Positions 1 to 48,900 of a stretch of 64,000 nucleotides of DNA are shown here, piece after piece. The stretch lies in assembly GCA_038087875.1 (NCBI GenBank), contig CM075979.1:39680001-39744000 (forward strand). The letters are read 5' to 3'. This stretch comes from Malacoraja senta (Eukaryota). The notes under the pieces are model-generated. The model worked only from the letters and a program-made list of their open reading frames with translations, ran no database searches and had not been told where the DNA came from. The translations under genes were made by a program, and so were the position numbers. Numbering within the stretch: position 1 is the first letter of the stretch; each line of letters begins with the position of its first letter.

Positions 1-711
1 CATTTCAAAGAAAGAGCTTTACAGCTGTTGCTTGGGTAGACAAAAATGCTGGTGAGACTCAGCGGGTGAGGCAGCATCTATGGAACCTACATCTGTCTCT
101 TGCTAAGTGCAGATGATAGCAAGAAATGCATCCAATTATGAAGTTGATGCACAGTTCTAAACATGACAACATAAATTATAGAATCTTTTTGCTTTCTTAT
201 TTTTTTCCATTTGAGTTAATGTGGTTGAAGCTCTTAATAGTTTTAAATCACCGGAGGCTTCTTCCTCCAACCACTGAGCAACAGGATATATTTGATTCAA
301 ATGCTCCTTAAATGCAACATCTTGTTACGATAAAGTTCAACACCCCTACATTGTGCTTGACAGCAGCATTGATCAGAGAGGTTTGCTCACAATGTGGACC
401 TACACTTTTATACTGGAAATGTTGTGGTCCGCCCATGGTTTCTGTTATGGGCCAGATCATGCCTCCTGTGAAAAAAGTTATTTCTGCCCAAAAATGAACT
501 ACGCAACTGAGCAACATTACTGCAATTGCCGCTCACTCTTTGCTGATTTCTGTATTATATTCTCTCCGCAATTCCCTTTTACAAGGCCTGCCAGCCACAA
601 GCTACGATATGAAATCACGCACTGTGTTTGATCAAAGGAGAAACATCATTTCTTGATTCTTGATGCAAACACTTTGAAATTACAACCTGATTTTCTTTTC
701 TTTGCCTCCAG

Positions 712-924
712 GTCAGGCAACTGTGACGTCTACAGGTAAATCAGGCCTCTGTAACTTTATTCTGTGTACTGAAGATTGTAAAGTTATGAAGTACACAGGA
801 AGATGTGAAAGTACAACCAGACCAGCAGAAACTACAACAGCAGCTACAACAGTGACAGTAACACCAACGTCAAGAGGAACTACCACATGTACCTGTGAGA
901 ATGACGGGCGAATAATGTTACCTG
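712..924 (+). CDS. Repeat exon 1, type A
   Basis: tttgcctccag|GTCAG...CCTG|gtaagt; 213 nt, phase 1-1; GQATVTSTGKSGLCNFILCTEDCKVMKYTGRCESTTRPAETTTAATTVTVTPTSRGTTTCTCENDGRIMLP. Confidence 0.92.
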
Positions 925-3900
925 GTAAGTGTGTCAATTATCACAGATCTCTTCCATGAACATTGAAAAGACAAAGAAATCCATAATCCCAAAGCTGAAA
1001 ATGGCAGCAGCAATGATTGGCAATGGATGGCAAATAATCACACCCTTGCTTTTCATTGGGTAAACGTATGTCCACCCATTTCCAAGGTTAATTGTACACG
1101 CCTGATCACGCACCTTCAGGAGACATTGCCATCTCCTCGCAATAATGAATCATGCAACTGAGTATCCGTTCTGCAGTTGTCAAGTAATCGTCTGCTGATT
1201 CCTGTATTGTGCTTTTACATTCACTCTACAATTCCCTTTTACACAGCCTGTCAGCAGCAACCGGCTTTGCCAAAATGTTATGCTTCACAACCAGACCATG
1301 GTGCTTGCACAGATGTGGTTCAGAACGTCCCGATCCTTGATGCATTCTGCAAAATAATATTCTCATATTTCAAACTTACTTACTAAGTGAAATGCATGAA
1401 CCAGGGTCATCAGCAGAGATAAAGATATAACATGCAGGTTCACAAACCCTGATTTTCTTTACTTTGTCTCCAGGTCAGGCAATGGTGATTTCTGCCGGTA
1501 AATCAGAGCTGTGTAACTTTACTCTGTGTACTAAGGTTCAAATGATTATGGGCCAAACACAGGTAAATGGGACATTCAATTAGGTAATTTGGTTAGCTTG
1601 GATGAGTTTCAATGCTGTATATCACTATGACTCTGGTGGATTGGATTTGAGAGGCAGTTCCTGCTCCGAGTGTGTGTATGTCTACATGGTGGCTGTTGGT
1701 GTTGTTCCAAATCTCAGAATGAATCTTGGAATATTGTGAAACTTAAAGAGTCTGGAAAGAGAATTTGGAGAACTGATGTTAAACTACACATGAGTCCTTA
1801 AGGAGCCATCACTATATCTGGGAAATGTCTGGAAATGATGAGTCCCTGAAAGCACTGATGTCCAAAAGCTACCAATGTCAAACACCATCAATGAAAACTG
1901 ATTCCCATTTTTTGTATCCATTCATCCCAGTTGGAAAACAAATGTGTTTGTTTGCATTAATGACAGAGCTAGAAGAACCGCTGCCAACCAGCTCCAAAAA
2001 CGCAGACAATGCTGTTTGCTCAGATTTGGTTCAGAACATCCTGATCCTTGAAGCAGACAGCAAAATAATATTCACATATTTCAAACTTATTTCCCAAGTG
2101 AAAGACAAGAACCAACTTCAACATCATACATAAAGATAGTCATCAGTTGCATCACCTTGACGTGTACACAACCTGATTTTTTTTTCTTTGCCTCCAGGTC
2201 AGGCAACTGTGACTTCTGCAGGTAAATCAGGCCTCTGTAACTTTACTCTGTGTACTGAGGATTGTGAAGTTCTGAAGTACACAGGAAGATGTGAAACTAC
2301 AACCAGACCAGCAGAAACCACAACATCAGCTACAACAGTGACAGTAACACCAACGTCAAAAGGAACTACAATCTGTTCATGTGATGTTGACGGACATATA
2401 ATGTCACCAGGTAAGTGTGTCAGTAATCAGTGCTCTTCTGTTCACATTCCAAAGAAAGAGCTTTACGGCTGTCTCTTGGGGAGACAAAAATGCTGGTGAG
2501 ACTCAGCGGGTGAAGCAGCATCTATGGAACCTACATCTGTCTCTTGCTAAGTGCAGATGATAGCAAGAAATGCATCCAATTATGAAGTTGATGCACAGTT
2601 CTAAACATGTCAACATAAATTATAGAATCTTTTTGCATTCTTATTTTTTCCATTTGAGTTAATGTGGTTGAAGCTCTTAATAGTTTAAAATCACCGGAGG
2701 CTTCTTCCTCCAACCACTGAGCAACAGGATATATTTGATTCAAATGCTCCTTAAATGCAACATCATGTTACGATAAAGTTCAACACCCCTACATTGTGCT
2801 TGACAGCAGCATTGATCAGAGAGGTTTGCTCACAATGTGGACCTACACTTTTATACTGGAAATGTTGTGGTCCGCCCATGATTTCTGTTATGGGCCAGAT
2901 CATGCCTCCCGTGAAAAAGTTATTTCTGCCCAAAAATGAACTACGCACCTGAGCAACCTTACTGCAATTGCCACTCACTCTTCTGCTGACTTCTGTATTA
3001 TATTCTCTCCGCAATTCCCTTTTACAAGCCCTGCCAGCCACAAGCTACGATATGAAATCACGCACTGTGTTTGATCAAAGGAGGTGCATCATTTCTTGAT
3101 TCTTGATGCAAACACTTTGAAATTACAATCTGAATTTCTTTTCTTTGCCTCCAGGTCAGGCAACTGTGACGTCTACAGGTAAATCAGGCCTCTGTAACTT
3201 CATTCTGTGTACTGAAGATTGTAAAGTTATGAAGTACACAGGAAAATGTGAAAGTACAACCAGACCAGCAGAAACTACAACAGCAGCTACAACAGTGACA
3301 GTAACACCAACGTCAAGAGGAACTACCACATGTACCTGTGAGAATGACGGGCGAATAATGTTACCTGGTAAGTGTGTCAATTATCACAGATCTCTTCCAT
3401 TCACATTGAAAAGACAAAGAAATCCATAATCCCAGGGCGGAAAATGGCAGCAGCATTGATTGGTAATGGATGGCAAATAATCACACCCTTGCTTTTCATT
3501 GGGTAAACGTATGTCCACCCATTTCCAAGTTTAATTGTACACGCCTGATCACGCACCTTCAGGAGACATTGCCATCTCCTCGCAATAATGAATCATGCAA
3601 CTGAGTATCCGTTCTGCAGTTGTCAAGTAATCGTCTGCTGATTCCTGTATTGTGCTTTTACATTCACTCTACAATTCCCTTTTACACAGCCTGTCAGCAG
3701 TAACCAGCTTTGCCAAAATGTTATGCTTCCCAACCAGACCATGGTGCTTGCACAGATGTGGTTAAGAACGTCCCGATCCTTGACGCATTCTGCGAAATAA
3801 TATTCTCATATTTCAAACATACTTACTAAGTGAAATGCATGAACCAGGGTCATCAGCAGAGATAAAGATTTTTTTTAATTTTTAAAAAAAAATATTTTTA

Positions 3901-6900
3901 TTTTATTAGAATTAAGTACAATCGTATGGCACCAAAGTGCCTAATATATATTTTCATAATACATTTTATGTACAGCTTCTTATTTTTTTATTATAATAAA
4001 AAAGAAGAAAAAGAAATTAGATAATAAAGTATAGAAAAACGTGAGATATATAGTGTGTGAAAAAGTAGAAAAAAGAATGAAAGAAGAAAGTTAAAGAAAA
4101 GAAAAGTAAGGAGATCATTATTTATACTCTTGACCATCCCTCGCCCAGTCCCGAGACAATTAGCTTTTACAATTGTGTTGCACCATATGATTCCAAAAAG
4201 ACGACAAATGGGGACCAACTCGTTATGAATTGGTCTGATTTATCTATTAGGAGGAATCGCATTTCCTCAAGATGTGCGGTATCCAACATGCTTGCAATCC
4301 ACTTTTTGAGCGAGAGATAAAGATATAACATGCAGGTTCACAAACCCTGATTTTCTTTACTTTGCCTCCAAGTCAGGCAATGTTGATGTCTGTCGGTAAA
4401 TCAGGGCTGTGTAACTTTACTCTGTTTACTAAGGTTCAAATGATTATGGGTCAAACACAGGTAAATGGGACATTCAATTAGGTAATTTGGTTAGTTTGGA
4501 TGAGTTTCAATGCTGCATAACACTATGACTCTGGTGGCTTGGATTTGAGAGGCAGTTCCTGCTCCTAGTGTGTGTATGTCTACATGGTGGCTGTTGGTGT
4601 TGTTCCAAATCTCAGAAGAATCTTGGAATATTGTGAAACTTAAAGAGTCTGGAAAGAGAATTTGGAGAACTGATGTTAATTTACACATGAGTCCTTAAGG
4701 AGCCATCACTATATCTGGGAAATGTCTGGAAATGATGAGTCAAGCAGTTCCCTGAAAGCACCAATGTCCAAAAGCTACCAATGTCAAACACCATCAAGCA
4801 AATCTGATTCCCATTTTTTGTATCCATTCATCCCAGTTGAAAAAGATTGTGTTTGTTTGCATTATTGACAGACCTAGAAGAATCGCTGCCAACCAGCTCC
4901 AAAAACGCAGACAATGCTGTTTGCTCAGATTTGGTTCAGAACATCCTGATCCTTGATGCAGTCGGCAAAATAATATTCGCATATTTCAAACTTATTTCCC
5001 AAGTGAAAGACATGAACCAGCTTCAACATCATACATAAAGATAGTCACCAGTTACATCACCTGCAGGTGGACACAATCTGATTTTTTTTTTCTCTTTGCT
5101 TCCAGGTCAGGCAACTGTGACTTCTGCAGGTAAATCAGGCCTCTGTAACTTTACTCTGTGTACTGAGGATTGTGAAGTTCTGAAGTACACAGGAAGATGT
5201 GAAACTACGACCAGACCAGCAGAAACCACAACATCAACTACAATAGTGACAGTAACACCAACGTCAAAAGGAACTACAATCTGTTCATGTGATGTTGACG
5301 GACATATAATGTCACCAGGTAAGTGTGTCAGTAATCAAAGTGCTCTTCTATTCACATTTCAAAGTAAGAGGTTTACCTCAGTCTTTAGCTTTGTGCAGAT
5401 GATTGCAAGAAATGCATCAGATTATGAAGCTGATGCATTACACTATACGTCAACAAAAATTATCGCAACTTATTGCTTTCAATGAATTTCCGTTTGAGTT
5501 AATGAGGTCAAAGTTTTTCATATCTCCAATGCGACCTTCTTCCTTGCAACCATAGAGCTACAGGATATATTTGGTTCAAATGCTCCTTAAATTCAACATC
5601 ATATTACGATACAGTTCAACATCCCTACATTGAGATTAGCAGCAGAATTGATCAGTAGAGGTTTGTACACAATTCCGAACCTCCACATCTGTACTAGAAA
5701 TTCTGTGGTCCACCCGATCCCATGGCTGTGTTATGGGCCTGATCATGCCCTGCTGAAAATGATATTTCTTCACAAAAATACACAATGCAATTAAGCAACC
5801 TTACTGTAATTCCCGTTAACTCTTCTGCTGGATTCTGTGTTGAGTTTTTCCATTCTATCGGCAATGCCATTTTGCAAGGCCTGCCAACCACAAGCTACGA
5901 TATGAAAACACACACTGGTATTTTTCAGGGGAGGGACAGAATTTATTGATTCTTGAGACAAACACATTGAAATTACATTAGAGCCTCCTCAACAATTCTG
6001 CACAACTGAAATATTCATATCCAACATCATACATAAAAATATTTATCAGTTACATCACCTTCAGGTGTACACAACCTGATTTTAATGTTTTGTCTCCAGG
6101 TCAGGCAACTGTGACGTCTACAGATAAATCAGGCCTCTGTAACTTTATTCTGTGTACTGAAGATTGTAAAGTTATGAAGTACACAGGAAGATGTGAAAGT
6201 ACAACCAGACCAGCAGAAACTACAACAGCAGCTACAACAGTGACAGTAACACCAACGTCAAGAGGAACTACCACATGTACCTGTGAGAATGACGGGCGTA
6301 TAATGTTACCTGGTAAGTGTGTCAATTATCACAGAGCTCTTCCATGAACATTGAAAAGACAAATAAATCCATAATCCCAGGGCTGAAAATGGTAGCAGCA
6401 TTGATTGGTAATGGATGGCAAATAATCACACGCTTTTCATAGGGAAAACGTATGTCCACCCATTTCCAAGGTTAATTGTACACGCCTGATCACGCACCTT
6501 CAGGAGACATTGCCATCTCCTCGCAATAATGAATCATGCAACTGAGTATCCGTTCTGCAGTTGTCAAGTAATCGTCTGCTGATTCCTTTATTGTGCTTTT
6601 ACATTCACTCTACAATTCCCTTTTACACAGCCTGTCAGCAGCAACCGGCTTTGCCAAAATGTTATGCTTCACAACCAGACCTGGTGCTTGCACAGATGTG
6701 GTTCAGAACGTCCCGATCCTTGACGCATTCTGCGAAATAATATTCTCATATTTCAAACACACTTACTAAGTGAAATGCATGAACCAGGGTCATCAGCAGA
6801 GATAAAGATTTTAAAAAAAAATATTTTTATTTTATTAGAATTAAGTACAATCGTATGGCACCAAAGTGCCTAATATATATTTTCATAATACATTTTATGT

Positions 6901-9900
6901 ACAGCTTCTTATTTTTTTATTATAATAAAGAAGAATAAGAAAAAGAAATTAGATAATAAAGGATAGAAAAACGTGAGATATATAGTGTGTGAAAAAGTAG
7001 AAAAAAGAATGAAAGAAAAAAGTTAAAGAAAAGAAAAGTAAGGAGATCATTATTTATACTCTTAACCATCCCTCGCCCAGTCCCGAGACAATTAGCTTTT
7101 ACAATTGTGTTGCACCATATGATTCCAAAAAGACGACAAATGGGGACCAACTCGTTATGAATTGGTCTGATTTATCTATTAGGAGGAATCGCATTTCCTC
7201 AAGATGTGCGGTATCCAACATGCTTGCAATCCACATTTTGAGCGAGAGATAAAGATATAACATGCAGGTTCACAAACCCTGATTTTCTTTACTTTGCCTC
7301 CAAGTCAGGCAATGTTGATGTCTGCCGGTAAATCAGGGCTGTGTAACTTTACTCTGTTGACTAAGGTTCAAATGATTATGGGTCAAACACAGGTAAATGG
7401 GACATTCAAGTAGGTAATTTGGTTAGTTTGGATGAGTTTCAATGCTGTATAACACTATGACTCTGGTGGCTTGGATTTGAGAGGCAGTTCCTGCTCCTAG
7501 TGTGTGTATGTCTACATGGTGGCTGTTGGTGTTGTTCCAAATCTCAGAAGAATCTTGGAATATTGTGAAACTTAAAGAGTCTGGAAAGAGAATTTGGAGA
7601 ACTGATGTTAAGTTACACATGAGTCCTTAAGGAGCCATCACTATATCTGGGAAATGTCTGGAAATGATGAGTCAAGCAGTTCCCTGAAAGCACCAATGTC
7701 CAAAAGCTACCAATGTCAAACACCATCAAGGAAATCTGATTCCCATTTTTTGTATCCATTCATACCCAGTTGAAAAAGATTGTGTTTGTTTGCATTATTG
7801 ACAGACCTAGAAGAACCGCTGCCAACCAGCTCCAAAAACGCAGACAATGCTGTTTGCTCAGTTTTGGTTCAGAACATCCTGATCCTTGATGCAGTCGGCA
7901 AAATAATATTCGCATATTACAAACTTATTTCCCAAGTGAAAGACATGAACCAGCTTCAACATCATACATAAAGATAGTCACCAGTTACATCACCTTCAGG
8001 TGGACACAATCTGATTTTTTTTTCTCTTTGCTTCCAGGTCAGGCAACTGTGACTTCTGCAGGTAAATCAGGCCTCTGTAACTTTACTCTGTGTACTGAGG
8101 ATTGTGAAGTTCTGAAGTACACAGGAAGATGTGAAACTACGACCAGACCAGCAGAAACCACAACATCAACTACAATAGTGACAGTAACACCAACGTCAAA
8201 AGGAACTACAATCTGTTCATGTGATGTTGACGGAAATATAATGTCACCAGGTAAGTGTGTCAGTAATCAAAGTGCTCTTCTATTCACATTTCAAAGTAAG
8301 AGGTTTACCTCAGTCTTTAGCTTTGTGCAGATGATTGCAAGTAATGCTTCAGATTATGAAGCTGATGCATTATACTATACGTCAACAAAAATTATCGCAA
8401 CTTATTGATTTCAATGAATTTCCGTTTGAGTTAATGTGGTCAAAGTTTTTCATTGCTCCAATGCGACCTTCTTCCTTGCAACCATAGAGCTACAGGATAT
8501 ATTTGGTTCAAATGCTCCTTAAATTCCACATCATATTACGATACAGTTCAACATCCTACATTGAGATTAGCAGCAGAATTGATCAGTAGAGGTTTGTACA
8601 CAATTCCGAACCTCCACATCTGTACTAGAAATTCTGTGGTCCACCCGATCCCATGGCTGTGTTATGGGCCTGATCATGCCCCGCTGAAAATGATATTTCT
8701 TCACAAAAATACACGATGCAACTAAGCAACCTTACTGCAATCCCCGTTAACTCTTCTGCTGGATTCTGTGTTGAGTTTTTCCATTCTATCGGCAATGCCA
8801 TTTTGCAGGGCCTGCCAACCACAAGCTATGATATGAAAACACACACTGGTATTTTCTCAGGGGAGGGACAGAATTTATTGATTCTTGAGACAAACTAATT
8901 GAAATTATATTAGAGCCTCCTCAACAATTCTGCACAACTGAAATACTCATATTCAACATCATACATAAAGATATTTATCAGTTACATCACTTTCAGGTGT
9001 ACACAACCTGATTTTAATGTTTTGTCTCCAGGTCAGGCAACTGTGACGTCTACAGGTAAATCAGGCCTCTGTAACTTTATTCTGTGTACTGAAGATTGTA
9101 AAGTAATGAAGTACACAGGAAGATGTGAAAGTACAACCCGACCAGCAGAAACTACAACAGCAGCTACAACAGTGACAGTAACACCAACATCAAGAGGAAC
9201 TACCACATGTACCTGTGAGAATGACGGGCGAATAATGTTACCTGGTAAGTGTGTCAATTATCACAGAGCTCGTCCATGAACATTGAAAAGACAAATAAAT
9301 CCATAATCCCAGGGCTGAAAATGGTAGCAGCATTGATTGGTAATGGATGGCAAATAATCACACGCTTTTCATTGGCAAAACGTATGTCCACCCATTTCCA
9401 AGGTTAATTGTACACGCTTGATCACGCACCTTCAGGAGACATTGCCATCTCCTCGCAATAATGAATCATGCAACTGAGTATCCGTTCTGCAGTTGTCAAG
9501 TAATCGTCTGCTGATTCCTTTATTGTGCTTTTACATTCACTCTACAATTCCCTTTTACACAGCCTGTCAGCAGCAATTGCTTTGCCAAAATGTTATGCTT
9601 CACAACCAGACCCTGGTGCTTGCACAGATGTGGTTCAAAACGTCCCGATCCTTGATGCATTCGGAGAAATAATATTCTCATATTTTAAACTTTCTTACTA
9701 TGTGAAATGCATGAACCAGGGTCATCAGCAGAGATAAAGATATAACATGCAGGTTCACAAACCCTGATTTTCTTTACTTTGCCTCCAGGTCAGGCAATGG
9801 TGATTTCTGCCGGTAAATCAGGGCAGTGTAACTTTACTCTGTGTACTAAGGTTCAAATGATTATGGGCCAAACACAGGTAAATGGGACATTCAATTAGGT

Positions 9901-12900
9901 AATTTGGTTAGCTTGGATGAGTTTCAATGCTGTATATCACTATGACTCTGGTGGATTGGATTTGAGAGGCAGTTCCTGCACCTAGTGTGTGTATGTCTAC
10001 ATGGTGGCTGTTGGTGTTGTTCCAAATCTCAGAATGAATCTTGGAATATTGTGAAACTTAAAGAGTCTGTAAAGAGAATTTGGAGAACTGATGTTAAGTT
10101 ACACATGAATCCTTAAGGAGCCATCACTATATCTGGGAAATGTCTGGAAATGAGGAGTCCCTGAAAGCACTGATGTCCAAAAGCTACCAATGTCAAACAC
10201 AATCAAGGATAACTGATTTTCATTTTTTGTATCCATTCATCCCAGTTGAAAAAAAAGTGTGTTTGTTTGCATTAATGACAGAGCTGGAAGAACTGCTGCC
10301 AACCAGCTCCAAAAACGCAGACAATGCTGTTTGCTCAGATTTGGTTCAGAACATCCTGATCCTTGATGCAGACAGCAAAATAATATTCACATATTTCAAA
10401 CTTATTTCCCAAGTGAAAGACAAGAACCAGCTTCAACATCATACATAAAGATAGTCATCAGTTGCATCACCTTGACGTGTACACAACCTGATTTTTTTTC
10501 TTTGCCTCCAGGTCAGGCAACTGTGACTTCTGCAGGTAAATCAGGCCTCTGTAACTTTACTCTGTGTACTGAGGATTGTGAAGTTCTGAAGTACACAGGA
10601 AGATGTGAAACTACAACCAGACCAGCAGAAACCACAACATCAGCTACAACAGTGACAGTAACACCAACGTCAAAAGGAACTACAATCTGTTCATGTGATG
10701 TTGACGGACATATAATGTCACCAGGTAAGTGTGTCAGTAATCAAAGTGCTCTTCTGTTCACATTCCAAAGAAAGAGCTTTACAGCTGTCTCTTGGGTAGA
10801 CAAAAATGCTGGTGAGACTCAGCGGGTGAGGCAGCATCTATGGAACCTACATCTGTCTCTTGCTAAGTGCAGATGATAGCAAGAAATGCATCCAATTATG
10901 AAGTTGATGCACAGTTCTAAACATGTCAACATAAATTATAGAATCTTTTTGCATTCTTATTTTTTCCATTTGAGTTAATGTGGTTGAAGCTTTTAATAGT
11001 TTAAAATCACCGGAGGCTTCTTCCTCCAACCACTGAGCAACAGGATATATTTGAATCAAATGCTCCTTAAATGCAACATCTTGTTACGATAAAGTTCAAC
11101 ACCCCTACATTGTGCTTGACAGCAGCATTGATCAGAGAGGTTTGCTCACAATGTGGACCTACACTTTTATACTGGAAATATTGTGGTCCGCCCATGGTTT
11201 CTGTTATGGGCCAGATCATGCCTCCCGTGAAAAAAGTTATTTCTGCCCAAAAATGAACTACGTAACTGAGCAACCTTAATGCAATTGCCGCTCACTCTTC
11301 TGCTGATTTGTGTATTATATTCTCTCCGCAATTCCCTTTTACAAGGCCTGCCAGCCACAAGCTACGATATGAAATCACGCACTGTGTTTGATCAAGGGAG
11401 GTACATCATTTATTGATTCTTGATGCAAACACTTTGAAATTACAACCTGATTTTCTTTTCTTTGCCTCCAGGTCAGGCAACTGTGACGTCTACAGGTAAA
11501 TCAGGCCTCTGTAACTTTATTCTGTGTACTGAAGATTGTAAAGTTATGAAGTACACAGGAAGATGTGAAAGTACAACCAGACCAGCAGAAACTACAACAG
11601 CAGCTACAACAGTGACAGTAACACCAACGTCAAGAGGAACTACCACATGTACCTGTAAGAATGACGGGCGAATAATGTTACCTGGTAAGTGTGTCAATTA
11701 TCACAGAGCTCTTCCATTCACATTGAAAAGACAAAGAAATCCATAATCCCAAAGCTGAAAATGGCAGCAGCATTGATTGGTAATGGATGGCAAATAATCA
11801 CACCCTTACTTTTCATTGGGAAAACGTATGTCCACCCATTTCCAAGGTTAATTGTACACGCCTGATCACGCACCTTCAGGAGACATTGCCATCTCCTCGC
11901 AATAATGAATCATGCAACTGAGTATCCGTTCTGCAGTTGTCAAGTAATCGTCTGCTGATTCCTTTATTGTGCTTTTACATCCACTCTACAATTCCCTTTT
12001 ACACAGCCTGTCAGCAGCAACCGGCTTTGCCAAAATGTTATGCTTCACAACCAGACCCTGGTGCTTGCACAGATGTGGTTCAGAACGTCCCGATCCTTGA
12101 TGCATTCGGCGAAATAGTATTCTCATATTTCAAATGTACTTATTAAGTGAAATGCAAGAACCAGCGTCATCAGCGGAGATAAAGATATTTTATGATTAAA
12201 TAACATGCAGGTTCACAAACCCTGATTTTCTTTACTTTACCTCCAGGTCAGGCAACTGTGATTTCTGCAGGTAAATCAGGCCTCTGTAACTTTACTCTGT
12301 GTACTGAGGATTGTGAAGTTCTGAAGTACACAGGAAGATGTGAAACTACGACCAGACCAGCAGAAACCACAACATCAGCTACAACAGTGACAGTAACACC
12401 AACGTCAAAAGGAACTACAATCTGTTCATGTGATGTTGACGGAAATATAATGTCACCAGGTAAGTGTGTCAGTAATCAAAGTGCTCTTCTATTCACATTT
12501 CAAAGTAAGAGGTTTACCTCAGTCTTTAGCTTTGTGCAGATGATTGCAAGTAATGCATCAGCTTATGAAGCTGATGCATTATACTGTACATCAACAAAAA
12601 TTATCGCAACTTCTTGCTTTCAATGAGTTAATGTGGTCAAAGTTTTTCATTGCTCCAATGCGACCTTCTTCCTTGCAACCATAGAGCTACAGGATATATT
12701 TGGTTCAAATGCTCCTTAAATTCCACATCATATTACGATACAGTTCAACATCCCTTCAATGAGATTAGCAGCAGAATTGATCAGTAGAGGTTTGTACACA
12801 ATTCCGAACCTCCACATCTGTACTAGAAATTCTGTGGTCCACCCGATCCCATGGCTGTGTTATGGGCCTGATCATGCCCCGCTGAAAATGATATTTCTTC

Positions 12901-36900: not shown

Positions 36901-39900
36901 TGAACATTGAAAAGACAAATAAATCCATAATCCCAGGGCTGAAAATGGTAGCAGCATTGATTGGTAATGGATGGCAAATAATCACACGCTTTTCATTCGG
37001 AAAACGTATGTCCACCCATTTCCAAGGTTAATTGTACACGCCTGATCACGCACCTTCAGGAGACATTGCCATCTCCTCGCAATAATGAATCATGCAACTG
37101 AGTATCCGTTGTGCAGTTGTCAAGTAATCGTCTGCTGATTCCTTTATTGTGCTTTTACATTCACTCTACAATTCCCTTTTACACAGCCTGTCAGCAGTAA
37201 CCGGCTTTGCCAAAATGTTATGCTTCACAACCAGACCCTGGTGCTTGCACAGATGTGGTTCAGAACGTCCCGATCCTTGATGCATTCTGCGAAATAATAT
37301 TCTCATATTTCAAACATACTTACTAAGTGAAATGCATGAACCAGGGTCATCAGCAGAGATAAAGATTATTTTTTTTTTTTTTAAATTTAAAAATATTTTT
37401 ATTTTATTAGAATTAAGTACAATCGTATGGCACCAAAGTGCCTAATATATATTTTCATAATACATTTTATGTACAGCTTCTTATTTTTTTATTATAATAA
37501 AGAAGAATAAGAAAAAGAAATTAGATAATAAAGGATAGAAAAACGTGAGATATATAGTGTGTGAAAAAGTAGAAAAAAGAATGAAAGAAGAAAGTTAAAG
37601 AAAAGAAAAGTAAGGAGATCATTATTTATACTCTTGACCATCGCTCGCCCAGTCCCGAGACAATTAGCTTTTACAATTGTGTTGCACCATATGATTCCAA
37701 AAAGACGACAAATGGGGACCAACTCGTTATGAATTGGTCTGATTTATCTATTAGGAGGAATCGCATTTCCTCAAGATGTGCGGTATCCAACATGCTTGCA
37801 ATCCACATTTTGAGCGAGAGATAAAGATATAACATGCAGGTTCACAAACCCTGATTTTCTTTACTTTGCCTCCAAGTCAGGCAATGCTGATGTCTGCCGG
37901 TAAATCAGGGCTGTGTAACTTTACTCTGTTTACTAAGGTTCAAATGATTATGGGTCAAACACAGGTAAATGGGACATTCAATTAGGTAATTTGGTTAGTT
38001 TGGATGAGTTTCAATGCTGTATAACACTATGACTCTGGTGGATTGGATTTGAGAGGCAGTTCCTGCTCCTAGTGTGTGTATGTCTACATGGTGGCTGTTG
38101 GTGTTGTTCCAAATCTCAGAAGAATCTTGGAATATTGTGAAACTTAAAGAGTCTGTAAAGAGAATTTGGAGAACTGATGTTAAGTTACACATGAGTCCTT
38201 AAGGAGCCATCACTATATCTGGGAAATGTCTGGAAATGATGAGTCAAGCAGTTCCCTGAAAGCACCAATGTCCAAAAGCTACCAATGTCAAACACCATCA
38301 AGGAAATCTGACTCCCATTTTTTGTATCCATTCATCCCATTTGAAAAAGATTGTGTTTGTTTGCATTATTGACAGACCTAGAAGAACCACTGCCAACCAG
38401 CTCCAAAAACGCAGACGATGCTGTTTGCTCAGATTTGGTTCAGAACATCCTGATCCTTGATGCAGTCGGCAAAATAATATTCGCATATTTCAAACTTATT
38501 TCCCAAGTGAAAGACATGAACCAGCTACATAAAGATAGTCACCAGTTACATCACCTTCAGGTGGACACAATCTGATTTTTTTTTTCTTTTTGCTTCCAGG
38601 TCAGGCAACTGTGACTTCTGCAGGTAAATCAGGCCTCTGTAACTTTACTCTGTGTACTGAGGATTGTGAAGTTCTGAAGTACACAGGAAGATGTGAAACC
38701 ACGACCAGACCAGCAGAAACCACAACATCAACTACAATAGTGACAGTAACACCAACGTCAAAAGGAACTACAATCTGTTCATGTGATGTTGACGGACATA
38801 TAATGTCACCAGGTAAGTGTGTCAGTAATCAAAGTGCTCTTCTATTCACATTTCAAAGTAAGAGGTTTACCTCAGTCTTTAGCTTTGTGCAGATGATTGC
38901 AAGAAATGCATCAGATTATGAAGCTGATGCATTATACTATACGTCAACAAAAATTATCGCAACTTATTGCTTTCAATGAATTTCCGTTTGAGTTAATGAG
39001 ATCAAAGTTTTTCATAGCTCCAATGCGACCTTCTTCCTTGCAACCATAGAGCTACAGGATATATTTCGTTCAAATGCTCCTTAAATTCAACATCATATTA
39101 CGATACAGTTCAACATCCCTACATTGAGATTAGCAGCAGAATTGATCAGTAGAGGTTTGTACACAATTCCGAACCTCCACATCTGTACTAGAAATTCTGT
39201 GGTCCACCCGATCCCATGGCTGTGTTATGGGCCTGATCATGCCCTGCTGAAAATGATATTTCTTCACAAAAATACACGATGCAACTAAGCAACCTTACTG
39301 TAATTCCCGTTAACTCTTCTGCTGGATTCTGTGTTGAGTTTTTCCATTATATCGTCAATGCCATTTTGCAAGGCCTGCCAACCACAAGCTACGATATGAA
39401 AACACACACTGGTATTTTTCAGGGAGGGACAGAATTTATTGATTCTTGAGACAAACACATTGAAATTACATTAGAGCCTCCTCAACAATTCTGCACAACT
39501 GAAATATTCATATCCAACATCATACATAAAGATATTTATCAGTTACATCACCTTCAGGTGTACACAACCTGATTTTAATGTTTTGTCTCCAGGTCAGGCA
39601 ACTGTGACGTCTACAGGTAAATCAGGCCTCTGTAACTTTATTCTGTGTACTGAAGATTGTAAAGTTATGAAGTACACAGGAAGATGTGAAAGTACAACCA
39701 GACCAGCAGAAACTACAACAGCAGCTACAACAGTGACAGTAACACCAACGTCAAGAGGAACTACCACATGTACCTGTGAGAATGACGGGCGAATAATGTT
39801 ACCTGGTAAGTGTGTCAATTATCACAGAGCTCTTCCATGAACATTGAAAAGACAAATAAATCCATAATCACAGGGCTGAAAATGGTAGCAGCATTGATTG

Positions 39901-42900
39901 GTAATGGATGGCAAATAATCACACGCTTTTCATTCGGAAAACGTATGTCCACCCATTTCCAAGGTTAATTGTACACGCCTGATCACGCACCTTCAGGAGA
40001 CATTGCCATCTCCTCGCAATAATGAATCATGCAACTGAGTATCCGTTGTGCAGTTGTCAAGTAATCGTCTGCTGATTCCTTTATTGTGCTTTTACATTCA
40101 CTCTACAATTCCCTTTTACACAGCCTGTCAGCAGTAACCGGCTTTGCCAAAATGTTATGCTTCACAACCAGACCATGGTGCTTGCACAGATGTGGTTCAG
40201 AACGTCCCGATCCTTGATGCATTCTGCGAAATAATATTCTCATATTTCAAACATACTTACTAAGTGAAATGCTTGAACCAGGGTCATCAGCAGAGATAAA
40301 GATTTTTTTTTTTTTAATTTAAAAAAAAAATATTTTTATTTTATTAGAATTAAGTACAATCGTATGGCACCAAAGTGCCTAATACATATTTTCATAATAC
40401 ATTTTATGTACAGCTTCTTATTTTTTTATTATAATAAAGAAGAATAAGAAAAAGAAATTAGATAATAAAGGATAGAAAAACGTGAGATATATAGTGTGTG
40501 AAAAAGTAGAAAAAAGAATGAAAGAAGAAAGTTAAAGAAAAGAAAAGTAAGGAGATCATTATTTATACTCTTGACCATCGCTCGCCCAGTCCCGAGAGAA
40601 TTAGCTTTTACAATTGTGTTGCACCATATGATTCCAAAAAGACGACAAATGGGGACCAACTCGTTATGAATTGGTCTGATTTATCTATTAGGAGGAATCG
40701 CATTTCCTCAAGATGTGCGGTATCCAACATGCTTGCAATCCACATTTTGAGCGAGAGATAAAGATATAACATGCAGGTTCACAAACCCTGATTTTCTTTA
40801 CTTTGCCTCCAAGTCAGGCAATGTTGATGTCTGCCGGTAAATCAGGGCTGTGTAACTTTACTCTGTTTACTAAGGTTCAAATGATTATGGGTCAAACACA
40901 GGTAAATGGGACATTCAATTAGGTAATTTGGTTAGTTTGGATGAGTTTCAATGCTGTATAACACTATGACTCTGGTGGATTGGATTTGAGAGGCAGTTCC
41001 TGCTCCTAGTGTGTGTATGTCTACATGGTGGCTGTTGGTGTTGTTCCAAATCTCAGAAGAATCTTGGAATATTGTGAAACTTAAAGAGTCTGTAAAGAGA
41101 ATTTGGAGAACTGATGTTAAGTTACACATGAGTCCTTAAGGAGCCATCACTATATCTGGGAAATGTCTGGAAATGATGAGTCAAGCAGTTCCCTGAAAGC
41201 ACCAATGTCCAAAAGCTACCAATGTCAAACACCATCAAGGAAATCTGATTCCCATTTTTTGTATCCATTCATCCCAGTTGAAAAAGATTGTGTTTGTTTG
41301 CATTATTGACAGACCTAGAAGAACCATTGCCAACCAGCTCCAAAAACGCAGACGATGCTGTTTGCTCAGATTTGGTTCAGAACATCCTGATCCTTGATGC
41401 AGTCGGCAAAATAATATTCGCATATTTCAAACTTATTTCCCAAATGAAAGACATGAACCAGCTTCAACATCATACATAAAGATAGTCACCAGTTACATCA
41501 CCTTCAGGTGGACACAATCTGATTTTTTTTTCTCTTTGCTTCCAGGTCAGGCAACTGTGACTTCTGCAGGTAAATCAGGCCTCTGTAACTTTACTCTGTG
41601 TACTGAGGATTGTGAAGTTCTGAAGTACACAGGAAGATGTGAAACTACGACCAGACCAGCAGAAACCACAACATCAACTACAATAGTGACAGTAACACCA
41701 ACGTCAAAAGGAACTACAATCTGTTCATGTGATGTTGACGGACATATAATGTCACCAGGTAAGTGTGTCAGTAATCAAAGTGCTCTTCTATTCACATTTC
41801 AAAGTAAGAGGTTTACCTCAGTCTTTAGCTTTGTGCAGATGATTGCAAGAAATGCATCAGATTATGAAGCTGATGCATTATACTATACGTCAACAAAAAT
41901 TATCGCAACTTATTGCTTTCAATGAATTTCCGTTTGAGTTAATGTGGTCAAAGTTTTTCATAGCTCCAATGCGACCTTGTTCCTTGCAACCATAGAGCTA
42001 CAGGATATATTTGGTTCAAATGCTCCTTAAATTCAACATCATATTACGATACAGTTCAACATCCCTACATTGAGATTAGCAGCAGAATTGATCAGTAGAG
42101 GTTTGTACAGAATTCCGAACCTCCACATCTGTACTAGAAATTCTGTGGTCCACCCGATCCCATGGCTGTGTTATGGGCCTGATCATGCCCCGCTGAAAAT
42201 GATATTTCTTCACAAAAATACACGATGCAACTAAGCAACCTTACTGCAATTCCCGTTAACTCTTCTGCTGGATTCTGTGTTGAGTTTTTCCATTCTATCG
42301 GCAATGCCATTTTGCAAGGCCTGCCAACCACAAGCTATGATATGAAAACACACACTGGTATTTTCTCAGGGGAGGGACAGAATTTATTGATTCTTGAGAC
42401 AAACTCATTGAAATTATATTAGAGCCTCCTCAACAATTCTGCACAACTGAAATATTCATATTCAACATCATACATAAAGATATTTATCAGTTACATCACC
42501 TTCAGGTGTACACAACCTGATTTTAATGTTTGGTCTCCAGGTCAGGCAACTGTGACGTCTACAGGTAAATCAGGCCTCTGTAACTTTATTCTGTGTACTG
42601 AAGATTGTAAAGTTATGAAGTACACAGGAAGATGTGAAAGTACAACCAGACCAGCAGAAACTACAACAGCAGCTACAACAGTGACAGTAACACCAACATC
42701 AAGAGGAACTACCACATGTACCTGTGAGAATGACGGGCGAATAATGTTACCTGGTAAGTGTGTCAATTATCACAGAGATCTTCTATTCACATTACAAAGA
42801 CAAAGATTTTGTGCAATGACTCTTGCTGTCTGCAGCTGTATTCTAAAAGTACCTCACATTTTGAAGTTGTTGCTCCAATCCATTTGTCAACCAGATGATA

Positions 42901-45900
42901 GATTGTGCTAAGTTATTTCTATTCTACATTTTTTTTCTGTATGATGAATTTTAATTTGAAGTTCTTAATTCCTCCAACTGTTACCAGAAGCTTCTTGCTT
43001 GCAACTGTTGAGCTCCAGGATAAAATTGTTTCAAGTGGTCCTCAGCAGCAACATCAGGTTGTGATGTAATCCATAATCCCAAAGCTGAAATTGGCAGCAG
43101 CATTGATTGGCAATGGATGGCAAATAAATACACACTTGATTTTCCTTGGGTAAAGTTATGTCCACCCATCCGCAAGGTCAATTGTACATGCCTGACCACG
43201 CACCTTCTGGAGACATTGCCATTTCTCGCGATAATGAATCATGCAACTGAGTATCCATTTTGCAATTGTCGCGCTATTGTCTTCTGATTCCAGTATTGTA
43301 CTTGTACATTCACTCCACCATTCCTTTACACAGCCTGTCAGCAGCAAGCAGCTTTGCCAAAATGTTATGCTTCACAACCAGACCCTGGTGTTTACCGGAT
43401 GATGTTCAGAACATCCCGATTCTTGACGCAGTCTGATAAATAATATTCACAAATTTAAAACTTATTTCTCAAATGATGGATATGAACAAGCTTCATTAGC
43501 GGAGATAAAGATATTTCATGGTTTTATTACATTCAGGTTCACACACCCTGATTTTCATTATTTTGCCTCCAGGTCAGGCAACGGTGATTTCTGCAGGTAA
43601 ATCAGGCCTCTGTAACTTTACTCTGTGTACTGAGGATTGTGAAGTTCTGAAATACACTGGAAGATGTGAAACTACAACCAGACCAGCAGAAACCACAACA
43701 TCAGCTACAACAGTGACAGTGACAGTCACACCAAAGTCAAAAGGAACTACCATCTGTTCCTGTGATGCTGACGGACATATAATGTCACCTGGTAAGTGTG
43801 TCAATTATCAAAGTGCTCTTCCAGTCACATTTCAAAGTAAGAAGTTTACCTCGGTCTTTAGCTTTGTGTAGATGACTGCAAGAAATGCATCAGATTACGA
43901 AGCGAACGCATTATCCTATACATGTTAATAGAAATTATAGCATCTTATTTCTTGAAATGATTTTTCTGTTTGGGTCAAAGTTTTTCGTTGCTCCAATGTG
44001 ACCTTGCAACCATTGAGCTACATGATATATTTGGTGCAAATGATCCTAAAATGCAACATCTTGTTACGATATAATTCAACACCCCTACATTGCGATTGGC
44101 AGCAACATTGATCATAGAGGTTTATTTACGATTGTGGACCTACACTTTTATACAGGAAATGTTGTCGTCCACCCGACCCTACGTTTTGTGTTATGGGCCA
44201 GATCATGCCTCCCATGAAAAAAGTTATTTCTGCCCAAAAATGAACTAAGCAACAGAGCAACCTTAATGCAATTGTTGCTCACTCTTCTGCTGCTTTCTGT
44301 ATTGAGCTTTTACATTTTCTCTGTAATTTCCTTTTACAAGGTCTGCCAGCCACAAGCTACGATATGAAATCACGCACTGATCTTTGCTCAGATGTGGTTG
44401 AGAATTTCTTGAGACTGGATGCAAACTCTTTGAAATTATAACAAAGCCTCCGCAACAATTCTGCACAACCGAAATACATAACTCAGCTTCAACATCAAAC
44501 AGAAATATAGTCATCAGTTCCATCACCTTCAAGTGGACACAACCTGATTTTCTTTTCTTTGCCACCAGGTCAGGCAACTGTGACTTCCGCAGGTAAATCA
44601 GGCCTCTGTAACTTTACTCTGTGTACTGAGGATTGTGAAGTTCTGAAGTACACAGGAAGATGTGAAACTACAACCAGACCAGCAGAAACCACAACAACAG
44701 CTACAACAGTGACAGTCACACCAACATCAAGAGGAACTACACAATGTACCTGTGAGAATGACGGGCGAAAAATGTTACCTGGTAAGTGTCAATTATCATA
44801 GACCTCTTCCATGCACATTGCAAATTAGCAGAGATAAAGATATTTCATGGTTTTATTATATTCAGGTGTACACAACCTGATTTTAATGTTTTTCCACCAG
44901 GTCAGGCAACTGTGACGTCTACAGGTAAATCAGGCCTCTGTAACTTTACTCTGTGTACTGAGGATTGTGAAATTCTGAAGTACACAGGAAGATGTGAAAC
45001 TACAACCAGACCAGCAGAAACCACAACATCAGCTACAACAGTCACAGTAACACCAACGTCGAAAGGAACTACAATCTGTTCCTGTGATGTTGACGGACAT
45101 ATAATGTCACCTGGTAAGTGTGTCAGTTATCAAAGTGCTATTCTAGTCACATTTCAAAGCAAGAGGTTTACCTCAGTCTCTTGCCAAGTGCAGATGATTG
45201 CAAGAAATGCATCAGATTGTGAAGCTGATGCATTGTCTTATACATGCCAACAAAAATTATACCATCTCTTCGCTATCATACTTTTTTGCGTTTGAATTAA
45301 AATGGACAAAGTTCTTCATTGCTCCAAAGTGCCTTCTTCCTTGCAACCATTGAGCAACAGGATATATTTGGCCGAAATGACCCTAACATGCAACATCTTG
45401 TTACAATATCTGTTGATTCTTGATACAAACTCTTTGAAATTATATGGAATCCTCCTCAACAATTCTATCCAACCGAAATACATAACTCAGCTTCAACATA
45501 ATACATAAAGATAGTCACCAGTTACATCACCTTCAGGTGGACACAACCTGATTTTCTTTTCTTTGCCACCAGGTCAGGCAACTGTGACGTCTACAGGTAA
45601 ATCAGGCCTCTGTAACTTTACTCTGTGTACTGAAGATTGTAAAGTTCTAAAATACACAGGAAGATGTGAAACTACAACCAGACCAGCAGAAACTACAACA
45701 TCAGCTACAACAGTGACAGTAACACCAAAGTCAAGAGGAACTACCACATGTACCTGTGAGAATGACGGGCGAATAATGCTACCTGGTAAGTTTGTCAATT
45801 AATTCATTCCTAAATTGTTTTAATTTTCTAATTAAACTTTTGTTTCAGACTCAAGGTCCAGATAAAAGACGACATTACATAGAATACATTGCATATAAAA

Positions 45901-48900
45901 ACACCATCAAATACATATAAAAGCTTAGTGAATTACTTATAAGAGCATCATAAATTATATACAAAAACACAACACATGATTTAAAATCCAGAATAAAAAG
46001 AAAGATCATGTCCTACAACGAGACAACGATACCAATGTCCACAGCTGTGATTGGTTGCATGTAGTGCTAAACCTTCATTTTCAGAGTCATTAATCCTGCA
46101 AATAAATTGATACATATGATTTCTTAGGATTCCTAGTAAAGTACAGACTCCTGCAGCCAAAAACATTTGACTTGCACTACACCATGTAGGTTTCTTTAGT
46201 AGTATTCTCATGACATCATTATTCGCTACTTTAAGTCTCTGTAAAATTGTTTTTCTGTAGTTTGACCACACGTGTGCAGTACAGAGTGGTGTACAATATG
46301 CTCTGAACAGAGACATCTTCACTACATCTGTACACGCACCAAACTTGTGAAAGGGAATATTCGCTTGTACATACAACATATGACGGTGCCTATAAATATC
46401 CTCATCATCTGCCACAGAGGGTAGTTGAGGCCAGTTCATTGGCTATATTTAAGAGGGAGTTAGATGTGGCCCTTGTGGCTAAAGGGATCAGGGGGTATGG
46501 AGAGAAGGCAGGTACGGGATACTGAGTTGGATGATCAGCCATGATCATATTGAATGGCGGTGCAGGCTCGAAGGGCCGAATGGCCTACTCCTGCACCTAT
46601 TTTCTATGTATCTATGTATTTCTATGTATCTAAGGAGTGAAGAGGAAGGGATACAGAACATGAAAGTCATGAGAGTCTGACGAAGGGTCTTGACCCAAAA
46701 CCTCACCCATTCCTTGTCTCCAGAGATGCTGCCTGACCCGCTGAGTTACTCCAGCATTTTGGTTCTATGTTCGGTTTAAAAGTTATAGACGTCTGATTTA
46801 ACTGCTGCCTGACCTGGAGACAGAGAAAATAAGGTTTACACCTGATACACTCATGACAGTGTAGCCAAATACCAACCTAACACATATTAAAATTCTCCAA
46901 ATTTAGGTAACTACATAAGTTCCTCCACCCCCCACCCCCCACCACATTGCCCACCCTCCCCTTTCTTCCCCCCCTCTCTCCCATGTGCCTCATCTAGACT
47001 TGCACTTATCTCCACCACTTCCACTTCCACTTCCATTTCTTCCTCTAGCCTCACGATTTGCAACTCATCAATCCTTTTCTCTTGCACGTTCTGACCTTTG
47101 CCTACACATCTGCATCTCCAAAACCCACCACAAGCAATCTGAATAAGAGTCCTGACCCAAAGTGTCACATTTCCATTTTCTCCAGAGATTCTGCCTGATC
47201 CGCTGAGTTACTCCAACACTTTGAGTCTTTTTTTGTAAACCAAAATCTGCAGTTCCTTGGCCCTTCATCTCATGTTCTGTGGAGATGCGGATCCAATGTT
47301 GCCAATGACCCACTGCTCTTTCTAGTTTGCGATGTACTCTTCCCATTGCATAGAGCTTGCCTGATGAAGAAAACACAGTTCAACAGCAGTCTACAAGCTT
47401 TGCAAAGGAATTGCCCAATACATATTTGTATATATCTTTGTATATTATATATATTTTGACAGCAAACAGCATCAAAATCCACAGGGTAGCTAACTAGTGT
47501 ATGGGCTGAAGAAACATTGTGGCATTAATAATATCAGTGGCAATGTAGTGGTGATGTAGCTTCTGCAGAATGAGTGGTGACTCCTAGTGTATTCTCTGCT
47601 TGAAATATGACTTTTGTTCATTTTTATATCCATCTAACACATTGATGAAGCATAATTCCTGTTGCTTTGACATGCAGGGCAATCCTCTGTGAGTTCTGAA
47701 GATAAATCGGGCCTCTGCAATTACACACTGTGCACTGAGGGCTGCAAAACGTTGACATATACAAGAAAATGCGAAAACACCTCTCCAATCACCGAGCACA
47801 GTACAGCTGAAACCACAACAGTGCAGACAACAACTCCCAGTTCCACAGCTTCAACAACCTGTTTCTGCAAAGTCAACGGCCAAGTAATATCTGCAGGTGA
47901 GTGTTTCACTTGTTCATAACATGTGACTGTATAAATCAATCATTAAATTGTACAATTGAAGTGATAGTCCAGTCCTTTACATGGCTTGATTCACAGTCCA
48001 TTGAATGCGTTTGTTAAAGACCTCTGTATAAGCTCAGCATGGGAATTTGTACAAATCACTATACGAACGTTGGTACAAACGTCTATGTCTTTCACAGGTC
48101 TTCCACACATGTTCCAGAGCAGTGGAAGCAGGCCTCTTATCAATGTGCCACTTCCTAATCTTCCCATGTGTGAGGATGTTCCCAGGCTTCCTTGTTCATG
48201 TGCTACTAGCCCAAGTTAGCCCAGACCCCTGATTTTGGCCTCATCTCCCCTTGACCAACTGGTATAGAGACGCAGACACCAAACTGACACCAGTACATAA
48301 CCTAGTGTTTCCAGCGAAGCAATCACAGTACTGATCATTTGCTGCTGTGCACTTACTTGGTTCACTCACACAAATACATGTGGCTTGTTAAAATATCCAA
48401 TTTTTCTTGTTCAGTTCAGTATATTATCACGTGTACCGAGGTAAAGTGAAAAGCTTTTGTTGTGTCCTAATCAGTTTGCGGAAAGACAATACATGATTAC
48501 ACTCGAACCATTCACAGTGTACAGATACATGATCAGGGAATAACGTTTAGTGCAAGGTAAAGCCAGTAAAGTCCAATCAAAGATAGTCAAAGGGTCACCA
48601 ATGAGGAGGATCGTCATTCAGGACTGTTCTCTGGCTGTGGTGGAATGTTTCAGTTGTCTGATAGCAGCTGGAAAGAAACTGTCCCTGAATCTGAAGGTGT
48701 GCATTTTCACTTCTATACCTTTTGCCCGATGGGAGAGGGAGAAGAGGGAGTGGGCAGGGTGTGACCCGTGCTTCTCTTTGTAAAGAATGTACTATCTGTA
48801 TGTCTGTCGGACTGTAAGAGCTTTCTCCTTTATTTCTCTGTTTTTACTTCGTCTTTCTATTTGTGGTATTTTTTGGTTCCTTTTGGTCTTTATTAATGTA

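Follow-up and report, generated by a model that had tools for sequence, protein, structure and literature searches.

What kind of protein is encoded by dozens of small, almost uniform exons that stand in a row ahead of the C-terminal exons of a mucin? The question is raised by a 64,000-nt stretch of the genome of the skate Malacoraja senta (assembly GCA_038087875.1, contig CM075979.1, positions 39,680,001 to 39,744,000, forward strand), here called the window, whose own coordinates are used throughout. An initial annotation, made from the letters alone, had described at least 40 tandem symmetric exons, each with a six-Cys module and a short Thr-rich spacer, and had proposed that they splice into a mucin D4 assembly. 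With a probability of roughly 0.8, we read the window as covering the 3' part of the central domain and then the D4 assembly of a MUC5-type gel-forming mucin of elasmobranchs, in which a six-Cys module situated before D4 (the pre-D4 module), split by a phase-1 intron, has been amplified as a symmetric exon. The repeated module is referred to as the bead.

Anatomy of the repeat-exon array

A frame-by-frame motif and splice-site scan of the whole window, which is free of any N, gave exactly 40 repeat units on the plus strand, running from unit 1 at 712-924 to unit 40 at 47678-47896:

712..45785, plus strand: 39 repeat exons alternating between types B and A, 213 nt long except for one of 219 nt (43573-43791), phase 1-1
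47678..47896, plus strand: exon 40, a divergent repeat exon of 219 nt, with 85% amino acid identity to the Leucoraja model

All 40 repeat exons are open, flanked by AG and GT, symmetric (phase 1-1) and furnished with six Cys codons; 38 of them measure 213 nt and two (43573-43791 and 47678-47896) 219 nt. Every acceptor consists of a pyrimidine tract followed by CAG/G (the slash marking the exon boundary), and the donor is G/GTAAGT in 39 exons and G/GTGAGT in exon 40. The scan thus bears out the tandem exons between 712 and 47896 as initially annotated, with their sizes, open frames, phase and invariant Cys. The wording "at least 40" was apt as well: positions 1-9741 of the window match 30565-40303 at 97.9%, and in this alignment position 1 corresponds to a point 37 nt downstream of the end of an A exon, so that the array runs on upstream of the window.

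Units 1-39 alternate strictly between two types, B (signature ...STGK...CTCENDGRIMLP) and A (signature ...SAGK...CSCDVDGHIMSP), and unit 40 is divergent. The repeat unit in Malacoraja senta is a two-exon A+B dimer, about 20 copies of which are present in the window and which continues upstream. Introns leading from A to B exons are mostly 744-782 nt long, and most of those leading from B to A exons fall into three length classes of about 560, 1270 and 1730 nt; both patterns break down among the last five repeat exons, with introns of 819, 459, 119 and 1892 nt. Tandem Repeats Finder did not pick up the array in the window because the period exceeds 500 nt.

Each repeat exon begins within a bead, whose second half it encodes, continues through a Thr-rich spacer of 27 aa and ends after the first half of the bead that follows. 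The bead itself, a 44-aa six-Cys module with the pattern C-x-C-x22-C-x4-C-x3-C-x8-C, spans the exon junction. Spacers between the Cys clusters measure 27 aa in 37 of 38 cases and are 55% Thr plus Ser; the bead-to-bead period is 71 aa, with one exon per repeat unit. Conceptual splicing of the repeat exons yields a product of 2,844 aa, with 240 Cys, 732 Thr (26%) and not a single Trp.

The symmetry of all 40 exons means that any subset could be skipped without a frameshift, and exon skipping was raised by Lang et al. 2006 for the multi-exon chicken Muc13 (PMC1552070). The repeat exons could then be real but serve as cassettes, with a variable subset included in each mRNA and the length of the mucin set by skipping. 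We consider this unlikely, as all 40 exons have strong, near-identical splice sites with no sign of regulated weak ones, and as Gnomon gene models from other species include long runs of consecutive units.

Constraint on exons and integrity of the array

Exons of the same type differ by a p-distance of 0.02, as compared with a mean of 0.13 and a median of 0.19 for the adjoining A-to-B introns. These introns form two families about 21% apart, and in pairs of units whose introns are 21-22% different the exons differ by 1.5-2.7%. A and B exons differ by 12%, and the flanks of A exons are essentially unalignable with those of B exons (39-48%). The ratio of nonsynonymous to synonymous differences per site (pN/pS) is 0.42-0.55, with pS (2.5-3.8%) far below the intron divergence. 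The repeat exons are under constraint relative to the introns, and the contrast in divergence calls for purifying selection or gene conversion focused on the exons, or a combination of the two; it would not arise from recent duplication alone.

Stretches of 5-10 kb inside the array show 97-98% mutual identity, not 100%. Sequence of this kind is hard to assemble, and the size of the array might be an assembly artefact, or the array might be a decaying or non-expressed duplication outside the functional mucin mRNA. Both variants of this alternative appear very improbable. The 40 units include 24 distinct exon sequences, together with two intron families and three intron length classes, and this variety, along with a segment identity of 97-98%, disfavours trivial duplication by the assembler. 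Not one of the 40 exons has a stop codon, a frameshift or a lost splice site, although the introns have diverged by up to 22%; decaying copies would not have retained every one of the 40 frames and 80 splice sites. In two genomic read runs, which may be from the assembled individual, repeat-exon unitigs occur at about 12-33 times the depth of the unique flank, which gives rough support for a multi-copy array, and gene annotations of other elasmobranchs contain arrays of between 9 and more than 50 units.

Join to the D4 assembly

Beyond the array, the C-terminal part of the gene could be followed almost to the end of the window:

52068..52258, plus strand: exon 41, completing the pre-D4 six-Cys module with its second half and passing through a brief Thr/Ser stretch into the start of D4N (GCPDVHPPRA); starts in phase 1, ends in phase 0
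54088..54262, plus strand: exon 42, D4N / VWC-like (MNETW...ECGC); weak Pfam VWC match, E 0.003
57231..57520 (3' boundary approximate), plus strand: exon 43, first VWD4 exon (CIGWGGSHYITFDG...); Pfam VWD, E 5e-15
59591..59776 (boundaries approximate), plus strand: second VWD4 exon; Leucoraja alignment and a weak VWD match
60428..60694 (boundaries approximate), plus strand: end of VWD4 and a short Thr/Pro-rich linker; 85% amino acid identity to Leucoraja
61439..61645 (boundaries approximate), plus strand: C8-4 exon; Pfam C8, E 4.5e-16, and Leucoraja alignment
63026-63097 and 63208-63321 (approximate), plus strand: two TIL4 exons; tblastn to the Leucoraja model

The 3' end of exon 40 provides the first half (C-F-C...ISA-G) of the pre-D4 module. 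Exon 40, ending in phase 1, reads in frame into exons 41, 42 and 43; the acceptor of exon 41 at 52067/52068, a pyrimidine tract followed by CAG/GA, finishes the Gly codon left by exon 40. The pieces downstream of the array share 81-97% amino acid identity with the C-terminal half of a Leucoraja erinacea gene model annotated as "mucin-2-like" (P0016), and D4N plus VWD4 of the catshark ortholog match the structure of the human MUC2 C-terminus (7qcu) with an E-value of 1e-52. The short TIL4 exon pieces gave no direct match in Pfam, and TIL was placed by alignment with Leucoraja. The in-frame splice into a VWD4-C8-TIL C-terminus, which the initial annotation had proposed, is borne out by the reading frame through exons 40-43, the Pfam matches to VWD and C8, and the Leucoraja alignment.

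With respect to the features that define gel-forming mucins, the gene has a C-terminal VWD4-C8-TIL assembly following the mucin domain, and a central domain which by composition, namely the Thr and Ser content of its spacers, is of the type rich in Pro, Thr and Ser (PTS) and is predicted to be O-glycosylated. That the array is a separate, stand-alone gene for a bead protein unconnected to the D4 mucin, as repeat-only gene models from Heptranchias (P0001), Narcine (P0002) and Heterodontus (P0015) might suggest, is hardly credible, since these models lack both a signal peptide and a proper end and resemble fragments of larger genes, since D3, PTS, beads and D4 are united in single protein models of Pristis, Leucoraja, Carcharodon, Cetorhinus and Chiloscyllium punctatum, and since the half-module that ends exon 40 is completed only by exon 41.

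Some further observations relate to this part of the window. Between the end of VWD4 and C8-4, a Thr/Pro/Ser-rich stretch of about 30 aa (60560-60660) is conserved in Leucoraja and Pristis; its composition makes an O-glycosylated hinge inside the D4 assembly likely. The Gnomon model P0016 of Leucoraja erinacea contains 14 extra residues (VCRDLWRLYFLFFP) within the pre-D4 module, at residues about 3160-3173. They correspond to read-through of the pyrimidine tract before the CAG/G acceptor, and the equivalent stretch in the window (52025-52067) is open. Since shark, Xenopus and teleost homologs do not have the 14-residue insert, the wrong acceptor was probably chosen in P0016. As to intron 40, genomic contigs of related species run from 49084 straight into 51945, which identifies the intervening 2.9 kb or so (49085-51944), largely very high-copy interspersed repeats, as a lineage-specific insertion. 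The intronic segments 46369-46821, 48388-48781, 50161-50554, 50949-51736 and 52328-52918 reach, in every DNA run, contig depths that sum to 1e5-1e7; all five are high-copy transposable elements or SINE-like (short interspersed element-like) repeats common to related species.

Origin of the bead and affiliation of the mucin

Exons 40 and 41 together form the pre-D4 module, and in the catshark ortholog the corresponding module can be aligned with the human MUC5AC chain 8qsp over residues 395-438 (E 2e-9), that is, with the small module just after D3 in human MUC5AC. Xenopus MUC5AC (P0020:1997-2040), turtle MUC5AC and a teleost mucin each have exactly one six-Cys version of the module ahead of D4, and in all three a five-Cys version follows D3. 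Bead and pre-D4 module have a common Cys spacing and can be aligned with each other. Judged by these alignments, the bead is an amplified copy of a conserved, unnamed pre-D4 module of MUC5AC-type mucins.

Over D1-D3, the skate ortholog shows 52-56% identity to tetrapod MUC5AC, as compared with 45-47% to proteins named MUC2. The higher identity to MUC5AC makes a MUC5-type mucin likelier than a MUC2, and the elasmobranch gene models named "mucin-2-like" are probably MUC5-like. With regard to the template of the repeat exon, we considered, and rejected, an ancestral giant PTS exon bearing half a module at either end, because in Chiloscyllium punctatum the post-D3 module lies whole inside the PTS exon, with the intron before the module and not within it.

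Distribution of the bead array and architecture of the orthologs

An exhaustive phmmer search of 1.84 billion representative proteins with one repeat exon (E up to 1e-3) gave ten matches, the top eight of which represent seven elasmobranch species and one ENA sequence; two weak, last-ranked matches to the sponge Ephydatia were rejected as an unrelated repeat. Including four species from a further search, the bead array is present in at least 11 elasmobranch species, namely the sharks Heptranchias, Heterodontus, Chiloscyllium (two species), Scyliorhinus, Carcharodon and Cetorhinus and the batoids Leucoraja, Rhinoraja, Pristis and Narcine. In many elasmobranch genomes the genes carrying the array are annotated as "mucin-2-like". 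The modelled number of copies varies by species, amounting to 1-3 (partly truncated models), 9, 11, 17, about 22, 37 and more than 50.

Genomic DNA of the sevengill shark Heptranchias perlo (L001, 910-33840) contains 22 exons of 222 nt with identical boundaries (AG/G-Q-A ... S-P-G/GT) and identical phase. Exon boundaries common to Heptranchias and the skate indicate that the exon design predates the split of sharks and batoids; the presence of A and B types also in Leucoraja indicates that the dimer is older than the split of the two skates. The Heptranchias perlo exons are spaced at 1536, 1552 or 1572 nt, and the variants GQAIVSS and GQAIVHS (S/H) mostly alternate. These exons are almost identical to each other, indicating very strong homogenisation within the species.

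Full-length orthologs have the order D1-D2-D'D3, post-D3 module, classical PTS, bead array, pre-D4 module, D4, VWC, CK, and the orthologs P0016 and P0003 contain four VWD, four C8, TIL and VWC domains. By comparison with them, D1-D2-D'D3 and the C-terminal VWC/CK of the skate gene would lie outside the window. The upstream PTS tract between D3 and the beads spans about 300 aa in Leucoraja, about 650 aa in Narcine and more than 750 aa in Chiloscyllium. The initial annotation had suggested a different polymer design. This holds for the alternation of beads and brushes, but the core does not consist of beads only, as the orthologs have this conventional PTS tract as well. Its contrast between the Trp-free repeats and the CysD domains of mammalian mucins agrees with the Trp-free repeat product and with Pfam analysis, in which CysD (PF13330) was absent from the full-length orthologs, including P0016 and P0013, and from all elasmobranch matches, while it was present in the tetrapod MUC5AC matches.

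Two gene models deviate from the general picture. In Narcine bancroftii (L002, 2945-13700), the three-unit model P0006 consists of degenerate bead exons, two of them with a Cys replaced by Trp (SALWNF), and is located within the limits of a different gene call (DHHC family); it probably represents a dispersed remnant of the array undergoing decay. The "mucin-2-like" model P0005 of Rhinoraja longicauda has a duplicated retrotransposon-like open reading frame fused on at residues 1 to about 560, which is a gene-model artefact.

Predicted fold of the bead

Pfam assigned no family, FN1 and VWC included, to single repeat exons. An AlphaFold2 model of a single module, calculated from an alignment of 47 sequences, had a predicted local distance difference test score (pLDDT) of 82 and was all-beta with five strands. 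The closest structural matches to this model (Foldseek, VIA-align) were the tPA finger (Z 5.6), FnI modules of FN1 (Z 4.5-4.8), E' and E3 of VWF (Z 4.5-4.6), E3 of MUC2, and VWC. These matches agree with one another but are weak, and an FnI / VWF-E-like class of fold is no more than probable on the basis of the model. A search of the ESM Atlas gave low-scoring leads only.

In an AlphaFold model of three units, all three beads were folded and both spacers had pLDDT values <50, which fits beads on a string. Cys clusters, spacer counts and the three-unit model together agree with the small disulfide modules and alternating 27-aa Thr-rich linkers seen at the outset. The beads are predicted to fold independently as small beta modules, each with three internal disulfides.

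At the third Cys of the bead, type A exons (for example 2198-2410) and the exons of most species share an N-glycosylation sequon, N-F-T. It is replaced by N-F-I in the type B units 1-35 (for example 712-924), whereas units 37 and 39 and the divergent exon 40 keep a sequon; over most of the array an N-glycan is thus predicted on only every second bead.

Proposed formation and function of the array

The evidence suggests the following course of events. The pre-D4 six-Cys module, split by a phase-1 intron, would have given rise to a symmetric exon that was amplified in tandem, each duplication by unequal crossing-over adding one whole bead and one linker with the frame kept. Because such an exon carries two half-modules around a mini-PTS, duplications are frame-neutral, and copy number can drift quickly. 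Selection, gene conversion, or both would keep the exon sequence uniform. In the secreted protein, the linkers are presumably densely O-glycosylated, and the array would form a long, semi-rigid core of short O-glycan brushes between disulfide knots about 2-3 nm across, by which the mucin core may be lengthened and stiffened. The beads may act as protease-resistant and possibly interacting knots, and may assume the spacing or cross-linking role of CysD.

Several points weigh against this interpretation of the locus. With pS of 2.5-3.8% so far below the intron divergence, gene conversion and not selection at the protein level may explain part of the similarity of the exons. The inclusion of 40 exons in one mRNA is inferred: searches for RNA runs containing the locus listed genomic-type runs only, and all six read runs examined were genomic-like, with introns covered like exons. 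The ortholog proteins are automatic gene models, several of them fragmented or erroneous. A sequence search of the PDB with the repeat module gave nothing significant, only chance matches to parkin, and the structural matches of the bead model score low, with Z no higher than 5.6 and a Foldseek E of about 0.3.

A wider proposition builds on the reading of the window as part of a MUC5-type mucin with an amplified pre-D4 module. The bead would be a hitherto undescribed, elasmobranch-wide mucin domain family derived from a captured FnI/E-like pre-D4 module, would replace CysD functionally, would have been kept by exon-focused concerted evolution since before the split of sharks and rays, and would be convergent with the design of the frog mucin MucXS discussed below. 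We see the case for this proposition as evenly balanced.

Although it belongs to no Pfam family, the bead accounts for the greater part of a major mucus protein in sharks and rays. The array represents a second, apparently independent route to a mucin core in which disulfide beads alternate regularly with short glycan brushes, arrived at here through amplification of an exon whose module is present once in every MUC5-type mucin. The array offers a natural system for studying how bead spacing relates to gel properties, how exons stay homogeneous despite intron divergence, and how copy number evolves. For annotators, the locus serves as a warning that "mucin-2-like" models of elasmobranchs are often fragmented in the bead region.

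Comparison with known mucins and modules

The initial annotation had left open whether the architecture had been described. A similar design has been published, and the gene itself is already annotated as "mucin-2-like". The published case is the Xenopus tropicalis skin mucin MucXS (formerly Otogl), a gel-forming mucin of VWD type (Dubaissi et al. 2018, PMC5789918). In the multi-exonic central domain of MucXS, 39 Cys-rich subdomains alternate with 34 PTS subdomains, and typical CysD domains are lacking; the authors propose that the Cys-rich repeats assume the role of CysD, and cite chicken Muc13 as a precedent for a multi-exon mucin domain (PMC5789918). As far as the published description of MucXS allows a comparison, the skate core resembles it in having many alternating Cys-rich and PTS subdomains spread over many exons and no CysD. 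The two differ in family and host, MucXS being an otogelin-like protein of a frog and the skate mucin a MUC5-like protein of an elasmobranch. The exhaustive phmmer search with the bead exon found no amphibian protein at E 1e-3, so the two designs are probably convergent, a likeness of design and not shown descent.

Frog mucins provide further points of reference. The FIM mucins contain shuffled Cys-rich modules (PMC7177656), and CysD occurs in 11 of 26 frog MUC2/5 paralogs (Lang et al. 2016, PMC4948705), indicating that CysD is not obligatory in the MUC2/5 group. For cartilaginous fishes, Lang et al. 2016 give no more than mucin gene counts, for Callorhinchus (PMC4948705), and our literature search for the architecture of elasmobranch mucin proteins gave only these counts and studies of mucus glycans.

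In bony vertebrates, MUC5AC-type mucins have one small Cys module on each side of the PTS region, whereas the skate gene has at least 40 copies, each packaged in an exon together with a mini-PTS. The bead shares its Cys spacing and its position adjacent to PTS with the pre-D4 module of bony vertebrates, which has no Pfam family. The CysD domain (Mucin2_WxxW, PF13330) measures about 100 aa, contains 10 Cys as well as a WxxW motif, and is found at long, irregular intervals inside one giant exon. The bead, in contrast, is a 44-aa module with six Cys, no Trp and a different predicted fold, recurring every 71 aa, and does not qualify as a CysD. What it shares with CysD is that it forms a Cys-rich globular break in an O-glycosylated core, and a similar punctuating or cross-linking role may be proposed for it.

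Like FnI, the E modules of VWF and mucins, and subdomain 1 of VWC, the bead would be a small, disulfide-held beta module of two sheets, as suggested by the weak match of its predicted structure; unlike these, its pattern has six Cys with an extra C-x3-C. In chicken Muc13, the mucin domain is likewise encoded with one repeat unit per exon (Lang et al. 2006, PMC1552070), but Muc13 is a transmembrane mucin with pure PTS repeats and no Cys module (PMC1552070), unlike the skate gene. The general design, a multi-exon core of Cys-rich and PTS subdomains, is therefore already known. What is new in the elasmobranch mucin is the module used, which is its own pre-D4 module, the lineage in which the design occurs, and its regularity.

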